A stretch of 63,964 nucleotides of DNA, filler included, from Sluysia triapertura (taxonomy: Eukaryota): NCBI GenBank assembly GCA_046118255.1. It is 5 parts of 5 records of this genome, joined end to end, with 100 filler letters (N's around TTAATTAATTAA, not from the genome) between each part and the next. Parts side by side here need not be neighbours in the genome. Positions count along the whole stretch, not along the records: positions 53,141 to 63,964 come from JBJNIA010192995.1; 4 more parts are not named here. The stretch is one strand, 5' to 3'. Below, in pieces: positions 62,414 through 62,960 of this stretch. The notes below the pieces were generated by a model. It was given only the letters and a program-made list of their open reading frames with translations, had not been told where the DNA came from and did not search any database. The number at the start of each line of letters is the position of its first letter. The first letter of the stretch is position 1. The translations under genes and the position numbers were made by a program.

Positions 62414-62960
62414 ATGAATGTTGATAATTTGTGGCGACAAAAAATTGAACGAGAATTAAATTTTAATTTAGTTGAAGAAGATTTTGTTAAATTACAAAGA
62501 GAGTACGATTTAAGCAAAAAAATAACCCGTAAAAGAGCCAGAGATATTTCAAGAAAATTAATTGGTATCTATCCTGATCAGGTTATTACAATTAATTTAT
62601 AATAATATTATCATTTTTAAGTAAAATTAAAGCATTATTTATTTATAGATTATATCATGGTTTAATTATAAATCATACTTATGTATGAAATATTTACCAA
62701 TAACAGAAAAAGTTAAACATTGTAAACAAAAAGTTACTAAACCTAAAGAAGTCATTTCATCACCACTTTCTCAAAATTCATTAGAAATAATTCACAATCA
62801 AGAAATATATTCAAATGCAACAGTAGAACAATTTAATCAGTTTTACAATTTTTACGACCAAATATGTAGAAGTTTAGAAGTGCATCAGCAGAATAAAACA
62901 ATTATGCCTCAGAATTTACTGATGCTTGCTAATGTTGCTAATTCAATATCATACAATTAG
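62414..62960 (+). CDS. Divergent homeodomain protein (exons 62414-62581, 62649-62960; 159 aa)
   Basis: A 67-nt phase-0 intron (CAG|GTTATT...TTATAG) joins the two ORFs: FNLVEEDFVKLQREYDLSKKITRKRARDISRKLIGIYPDQ|IISWFNYKSYLCMK. Core residues L16, Y20, I26, I34, L38, I40, I45, W48 and F49 align; the intron sits at homeodomain 44/45. Confidence 0.75.

Follow-up and report, generated by a model that had tools for sequence, protein, structure and literature searches.

Divergent homeodomains, and homeodomain derivatives that do not bind DNA, are already known kinds of protein. Arg53 is a near-invariant DNA contact of the homeodomain. Asn51 is said, after Gehring et al. 1994, to be a near-invariant contact as well. 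The residues L16, F20, W48 and F49 form the hallmark signature of the homeodomain, and 99 of 106 Drosophila homeodomains have R5 (PMC4901127). An intron at site 44/45 is documented in the Dlx genes (PMC3199776); it also occurs in Bsx and Nanog and is found in a small number of homeodomain genes only (PMC3201656).

HOPX has a homeodomain without the DNA-binding residues and is a non-DNA-binding co-factor that acts with SRF and HDAC (PMC6997107, PMC9179269). TGIF1 is a homeodomain repressor that carries, in a C-terminal amphipathic helix, the consensus phi-x-x-L-phi-x-phi-A of the Sin3A PAH2 binders Mad1, HBP1, Pf1 and TGIF1 (PMC8657803).

Here we describe a gene from the genome of Sluysia triapertura that appears to combine features of these systems. 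The window is the whole stretch of DNA that was presented (63,964 nucleotides, filler included), and the piece analysed covers positions 53141-63964, which is eukaryotic DNA of approximately 24% GC. We put the probability at roughly 0.55 that the locus is a lineage-restricted two-exon gene for a small nuclear regulator, derived from a homeodomain and working as a non-canonical cofactor in the manner of HOPX. If this is correct, it would be a second, independent case after HOPX of a homeodomain turned non-DNA-binding cofactor, and one from outside the vertebrates. It would also be a cofactor under purifying selection with an added helix of its own and a possible corepressor-recruiting tail. The features of the locus are as follows, where L001 is a genomic contig from another species that carries the same gene.

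62271-62278, no strand assigned: the palindrome TGACGTCA, CRE-like, a candidate promoter element 136 bp 5' of the ATG; sole match in the window, 0.07 expected
62414-62581, plus strand: exon 1, 56 codons from the ATG at 62414, ending ..YPDQ (from translation)
62414-62581, plus strand: content of exon 1, namely a conserved N-terminal amphipathic helix (LWxQxIERxL), homeodomain-like helix 1 (..EDFxKLxxEY..) and helix 2 (KITRKRARxISRKLIG)
62582-62648, plus strand: intron of 67 nt, GT..AG, phase 0, 10% GC, at homeodomain position 44/45
62649-62696, plus strand: start of exon 2 with helix 3 of the homeodomain-like domain, IISWFNYKSYLCMKYL; N50, Y51, K52 and S53
62697-62912, plus strand: linker and tail in exon 2, fast-evolving, with low identity to L001 and a small aromatic block (..FYxFY..)
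62913-62948, plus strand: conserved C-terminal motif NLLMLANVANSI, a candidate amphipathic helix like a Sin3-interaction domain (SID); the L001 counterpart is NLIMLADAAESI
62958-62960, plus strand: stop codon TAG, read from the sequence
62995-63000, plus strand: AATAAA, a candidate polyadenylation signal 35 nt 3' of the stop, read from the sequence

Exon 2 as a whole (62649-62960) comprises 103 codons plus the TAG and lies in a frame that differs in phase from that of exon 1. Joined, the two exons encode a protein of 159 aa. An earlier note on this DNA had described just such an uninterrupted spliced protein, joined at 62581/62649, and the sequence bears this out. An in-frame TAA stands two codons 5' of the ATG at 62414, and the TAG triplet directly before exon 2 doubles as the source of the acceptor AG. 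Because nine stop-free stretches of at least 90 codons occur in the piece, the length of the reading frame alone is not remarkable. Judged by alignment, it is conservation across species, not ORF length, that places the gene beyond chance.

Relatives of exon 1 were sought with phmmer among 1.84 billion cluster representatives. Only two true relatives were found, P0001 (E = 5e-18) and P0002 (E = 7e-15). L001, the genomic contig on which P0001 sits, is 1366 bp long and was built from a public sequencing run; P0002 is the UniParc entry UPI0006060A9E from a third species. In L001, exon 1 (805-972) is exactly 56 codons long and exon 2 (1027-1341) has 104 codons. The intron between them is 54 nt, GT..AG, and stands at the same codon boundary, while its sequence is unalignable with that of the window intron. 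The P0002 protein runs uninterrupted over the junction, ..YPDQ being followed by VISWFNYKTWLSMKYL; the residues that meet there are YPDQ and VISWFNYK. Exon 1 of the window shares 65-70% identity with P0001 and P0002, and 34 of the 54 columns are invariant in the three-species alignment of this exon. Start, splice sites, frame and stop are intact in both genomic copies (window and L001). The AATAAA of L001 overlaps the L001 stop codon. L001 also has an in-frame ATG 11 codons 5' of the conserved MNV start (772-804); the window has a stop at the place of this upstream ATG, which makes the shared MNV start the likely one.

With P0002 as the query, the word-index protein search returned P0001 and P0002 alone; with exon 2 as the query, it gave no candidates. 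Exact look-ups of the window ORFs gave no record, and a look-up of the second ORF of L001 returned a single contig, L001 again. A scan of metagenome contigs with the exon-1 alignment gave 313 pattern matches with no relative among them, and a local tblastn over the 10.8-kb piece found no paralogue of the gene. Among approximately 15 billion predicted proteins the detectable relatives number two, neither of which has a descriptive name. Because only these two other members can be detected, the gene is, by the measure of these searches, a lineage-restricted and essentially undescribed regulator. A further protein, P0003 (1892 aa, four stretches, E = 5.5e-4), was considered as a relative and rejected. 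It is repetitive and coiled-coil-like (DEQLExLxQEYD), has no homeodomain, and was taken for a composition and repeat artefact.

The conserved domain and the tail have evolved at different rates. Between the window and L001, 51 of 73 residues are identical in the domain and 19 of 82 (23%) in the tail. Identity at codon positions 1, 2 and 3 is 78%, 85% and 30% in the domain and 0.37, 0.57 and 0.24 in the tail. The search for orthologues yielded two relatives, and the comparison with L001 gave dN = 0.20 with synonymous sites saturated. The two copies differ widely in base composition (GC3 17.5% in the window versus 55% in L001; coding GC 26% versus 43%). The constrained codon pattern, and a dN of this size beside a saturated dS, despite the gap in composition, point to purifying selection on the protein. 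In the three species the N-terminal amphipathic stretch LWxQxIERxL is invariant. It is followed by ..EDFxKLxxEY.. and by KITRKRARxISRKLIG[I/V]YPDQ, of which the basic helix 2 part KITRKRARxISRK is invariant too, and after the intron the helix 3 block [I/V]xSWFNYK[S/T][Y/W]L[C/S]MKYL is kept. Outside the domain, the window and L001 agree at 8 of the 16 final aligned residues. The AlphaFold confidence falls below 50 in the region of P0002 that corresponds to the linker and tail. On this comparative evidence the two-exon gene is genuine, and selection maintains it in three species or more.

The assignment of the N-terminal domain is borderline. Pfam scores for the homeodomain come from P0002, which is a proxy 50-65% identical to the window protein. 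The homeodomain profile PF00046, which has a gathering cut-off of 22.9 bits, matched full-length P0002 at 19.4 bits (E = 9.5e-4) and residues 15-72 of P0002 at 20.9 bits (E = 3.1e-4), both below the cut-off. The match spans profile positions 9/10-49 of 57 and ends right after WF. The window exons, searched separately against Pfam, gave no homeodomain match and DUF3073 at E = 0.04 only. The domain alignment A3 was searched as a profile against 177,635 distinct PDB sequences at E <= 10, and 13 of its 16 matches were homeodomain chains (engrailed variants and HOXB13). A tandem engrailed construct was matched at E = 4.9e-5 and single homeodomains at E = 0.057-0.8. By language-model features of residues 1-72 of P0002, HOPX and other homeodomain clusters came top, with a weak score of 0.77. 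Exon 1 alone, by the same kind of search, drew F-box clusters at a weak 0.82; an F-box identity was rejected, as the score is below the useful range and no LPxE-type F-box pattern is present.

A low-confidence AlphaFold2 model of P0002 built on a shallow alignment (pLDDT 57, pTM 0.31) places helices at 17-31, 37-50 and 52-69, exactly where the register of HMMER puts the three helices of a homeodomain, and predicts an extra helix at 2-13. The model of full-length P0002 has a pLDDT of 53. The best Foldseek rows for the low-confidence model were Scr, HOXB13 and engrailed, without significance (E = 5, TM 0.35). VIA-align and atlas structure searches with the low-confidence models returned noise only. 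At the aligned signature positions 16, 20, 48 and 49, all three species have L, Y, W and F, where Y for F20 is a conservative change. HMMER further matched T27, R28, R30, I34, S35, L38, Q44 and V45, and it aligned the part encoded by exon 1 to helices 1 and 2 of engrailed. The hydrophobic core is kept (L16, Y20, I26, I34, L38, V45, W48 and F49).

The homeodomain named in the earlier note is backed in rank and not in score. PF00046, the PDB profile, the language-model features and Foldseek all put homeodomains first, but the supporting methods are not fully independent and every one is below its conventional threshold. Taken together, these matches make a homeodomain ancestry of the N-terminal domain likely, if borderline. 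That the gene would be missed in homeobox counts, another expectation of that note, is borne out. Because the family scores below the Pfam homeobox cut-off (20.9 bits at best), homeobox surveys would not count it, and threshold-based censuses miss such genes (19-21 bits versus 22.9).

In HMMER alignments to engrailed homeodomains, the domain has one extra residue in the turn between helices 2 and 3 (LIG[I/V]YPDQ versus L-x-L-x-x-x-Q). The DNA-facing residues of the three species in this register are E at 3, N/S at 5, A at 31, S at 47, N at 50, Y at 51, K at 52, S/T at 53, Y/W at 54, L at 55 and M at 57. The canonical R5, I/V47, N51, R53, K/R55 and K/R57 are thus all replaced (N/S5, S47, Y51, S/T53, L55 and M57). 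Several particulars reported earlier from the sequence hold in this register, which is anchored on W48 and F49: helix 3 as IISWFNYKS with N50, Y51, K52 and S53, the insertion of one residue before helix 3, the retention of the hydrophobic core and of the 44/45 intron, and the missing Arg5-type basic arm (position 5 is N). The states at the contact positions are identical or conservative across the three species, so that the non-canonical contacts are a selected condition and not decay. With a pI of 9.5-9.75 the domain is basic, yet well below the level of typical homeodomains. From the near-total loss of the residues that usually touch DNA, the protein probably works as a cofactor, and we infer that canonical DNA binding has been lost. 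Of the 'pseudo-homeodomain regulator' that had been proposed, the intact gene and its non-canonical, conserved helix 3 stand, but the homology to homeodomains is only borderline.

Several other explanations have to be weighed. AT-rich ORFs of this kind do arise by chance, as the other long stop-free stretches in the piece illustrate, and the gene is missing from the protein collections of this genome, so that one might suspect a chance ORF or the decaying pseudogene of a canonical homeobox gene. The probability of this is negligible. The gene is conserved in three species with synonymous sites saturated and non-synonymous sites constrained, neither genomic copy has a broken frame, start, splice site or stop, and the non-canonical helix 3 is invariant. 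The possibility that this copy is simply decaying is refuted because the odd helix 3 (SWFNYK[S/T]) is conserved under purifying selection, and on these alignments both a chance ORF and a decaying pseudogene are excluded. A homeodomain derivative could instead still bind DNA with a new specificity, either because the bases are read by Y51 and Y/W54 and the backbone is contacted by the basic helix 2 together with K52 and K58, or because the true register is ungapped and places N at 51, K at 53 and W at 49. The domain is still basic, as its pI shows, with KITRKRARxISRK invariant; a gap-free reading from L38 gives I47, W49, N51 and K53, and W is possible at position 49 (PMC4901127). However, the gapped register is the one that HMMER consistently chooses, and it matches Q44, V45, W48 and F49. 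The ungapped one puts S in core position 48 and F in exposed position 50 and loses the Q44-V45 match. With the basic N-terminal arm missing and only two basic residues in helix 3, continued DNA binding seems unlikely.

The domain may also not derive from a homeodomain. A lineage-specific helical bundle could owe its likeness to convergence, amphipathic periodicity and basic composition, and consistent with this are the sub-threshold value of every homeodomain score, the structure searches that gave no meaningful match, the F-box clusters drawn by exon 1 alone and the conserved N-terminal helix, which has no homeodomain counterpart. Against it, homeodomains came first in four approaches (Pfam HMM, PDB profile, language-model features and the top rows of Foldseek), residues match at the signature positions L16, F/Y20, T27, R28, R30, I34, L38, Q44, V45, W48 and F49, and the intron lies at a known homeodomain intron site; we regard such a bundle as improbable, about to the same degree as continued DNA binding. 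A more specific version, in which the domain is a four-helix bundle like the PAH domains of Sin3 that docks its own C-terminal SID-like helix or competes with Sin3 for SID-bearing factors, is considerably less probable still. Exon 1 of L001, which is also in P0001, does match the Pfam PAH profile PF02671 (E = 0.069-0.098, 12.8-13.3 bits, profile positions 4-36 of 45), AlphaFold predicts four helices at low confidence, Sin3B PAH structures appear in the VIA-align list at Z of approximately 4, and the C-terminus has a motif in line with the PAH2-binder consensus. The stretch ..YPDxIxxxFN.. also has what we take to be a resemblance to the motif of PAH helix 4. The PAH score, however, is below the gathering cut-off of 21.3 bits, with no match on P0002 (whole domain) or on exon 1 of the window. 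The A3 matches in the PDB include 0 PAH chains versus 13 homeodomains, and the VIA-align Z values lie within noise. PAH domains are moreover rare outside Sin3, and divergent homeobox duplicates are common.

The preferred reading remains that of a homeodomain derivative working as a cofactor. The N-terminal 70 residues would be homeodomain-derived, nearest to engrailed/Hox and with an intron at 44/45 as in some NK-like genes, and would have gained the residue in the helix 2-3 turn as well as the extra conserved N-terminal helix. The reading of DNA in the style of a homeodomain would have been given up and the protein would bind other proteins instead, as vertebrate HOPX does. The aromatic face of helix 3 that formerly met DNA (Y51, Y/W54 and L55) and the N-terminal amphipathic helix could then serve as interaction surfaces, and the basic helix 2 (KITRKRAR) as a patch for nuclear localisation or backbone contact. 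For the conserved C-terminal amphipathic motif, recruitment of Sin3/HDAC is a possible role, by analogy with the SIDs of Mad1 and TGIF1. Neither this Sin3-interaction-like motif nor the extra N-terminal helix, which is conserved as well, figured in the first reading of the sequence.

Like HOPX, the protein is small and has a homeodomain-type domain without the conserved DNA-contact residues, and the HOPX clusters were the nearest named clusters by language-model features (0.77). It differs from HOPX in size (159 aa versus 73 aa) and in its extra N-terminal helix, one-residue loop insertion, helix-3 NYK[S/T] and C-terminal motif. HOPX is absent from the phmmer matches among the 1.84 billion cluster representatives and from the A3 matches in the PDB. 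Because there is no HMMER-level similarity to HOPX, the gene is not a HOPX orthologue; by this comparison, that it works like HOPX is what we infer, and that it is a HOPX fails. If the domain is a homeodomain, the contact residues were lost independently of HOPX.

The best sequence matches are to the engrailed/Hox (ANTP-class) homeodomains, with L16, F/Y20, T27, R28, R30, I/L34, S/A35, L38, Q44, V/I45, W48 and F49 in common, and the 44/45 intron is shared with Dlx, Bsx and Nanog. In contrast to the engrailed/Hox proteins, the window protein has none of R5, I/V47, N51, R53, K55 and K57, scores below the Pfam cut-off, has an insertion of one residue before helix 3 and has a predicted helix in place of the N-terminal arm. 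In its architecture, a homeodomain and then an amphipathic helix at the C-terminus with a motif that fits the PAH2-binder consensus, the protein resembles TGIF1 (PMC8657803), whereas the three-residue loop of the TALE class is missing and there is no sequence relation to the TGIF homeodomain. With the PAH domain of Sin3 (PF02671) the likeness consists of the weak Pfam match on exon 1 of L001 and the predicted four-helix content; the match is sub-threshold and inconsistent among the orthologues, and the PDB profile matches are homeodomains.

Few blocks outside the domain are conserved, and the C-terminal motif is among them. The blocks LLMLANVA (window) and LIMLADAA (L001) fit phi-x-x-L-phi-x-phi-A, an eight-residue pattern for which a chance match is possible. 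The core of the Mad1 SID is presumably very similar to both. A phmmer search of the short C-terminal peptides against the PDB gave no match. That the motif recruits Sin3 is a tentative suggestion from its fit to the consensus, and somewhat doubtful. About equally doubtful is the wider proposal of an invertebrate, independently evolved dead homeodomain that resembles HOPX and recruits Sin3/HDAC through a Mad-like SID. A self-contained mimic of Sin3 recruitment that owes nothing to homeodomain function, with an N-terminal bundle that is PAH-like (or derived from a homeodomain and PAH-mimicking) and a Mad/TGIF-type SID helix in one polypeptide, is very improbable; if real, it could inhibit itself, form head-to-tail oligomers, or titrate Sin3 or SID-bearing repressors as a decoy. 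The milder HOPX-like Sin3/HDAC proposal is more likely than this mimic.

The upstream octamer TGACGTCA also occurs in L001 (632-639), 166 bp 5' of the L001 ATG, where an AP-1-like TGAGTCA adjoins it. CCAAT motifs follow the octamer in both the window and L001, and the two upstream regions show no alignment otherwise. The octamer and CCAAT may, from their shared arrangement, constitute a conserved promoter layout. On the minus strand opposite exon 1, a 94-codon stop-free frame extends over 62287-62568. Its counterpart in L001 is 46 aa only, so the antisense frame of the window is probably a by-product of the codon composition of the sense strand.

Other features of the piece were noted. An intronless 198-aa ORF on the minus strand (54015-54611) matches the Pfam family of RNase P/MRP subunit p29 (E = 2.4e-13). 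A word-index protein search with this ORF gave no relative at E <= 1e-3, and its divergence suggests a genome from a lineage that evolves fast or has been poorly sampled. A basic, coiled-coil-like ORF on the plus strand (54945-55295), with no Pfam family, stands approximately 330 bp away in head-to-head orientation to the p29 gene. Its start (MNVEN..) resembles that of the homeodomain-like gene (MNVDN..), and its pattern recalls what we assume to be the N-terminus of the splicing factor ISY1. Rfam and tRNA scans of 53141-63964 gave no match.

The GC-richest part of the piece (35%) contains a 196-codon open frame on the plus strand (59838-60428) that has no Pfam match. The sequence GNNFYIYYLFGNNFKSE at its end resembles the final transmembrane helix of a GPCR with the NPxxY region, for which it is a candidate. 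Between 60590 and 61365 there is a local duplication, a 183-nt direct repeat (60659-60841 and 61183-61365) of 97% identity, with a 37-nt repeat at 60590 and 60842. The repeats flank (ATA/ATT)n runs and short minus-strand ORFs that have ..VLVNMS.. in common, and the duplication could be a tandem duplication or the remnant of a transposon. Downstream of the homeodomain-like gene, a (TA)n microsatellite (63536-63558) lies inside a 50-nt imperfect palindrome.
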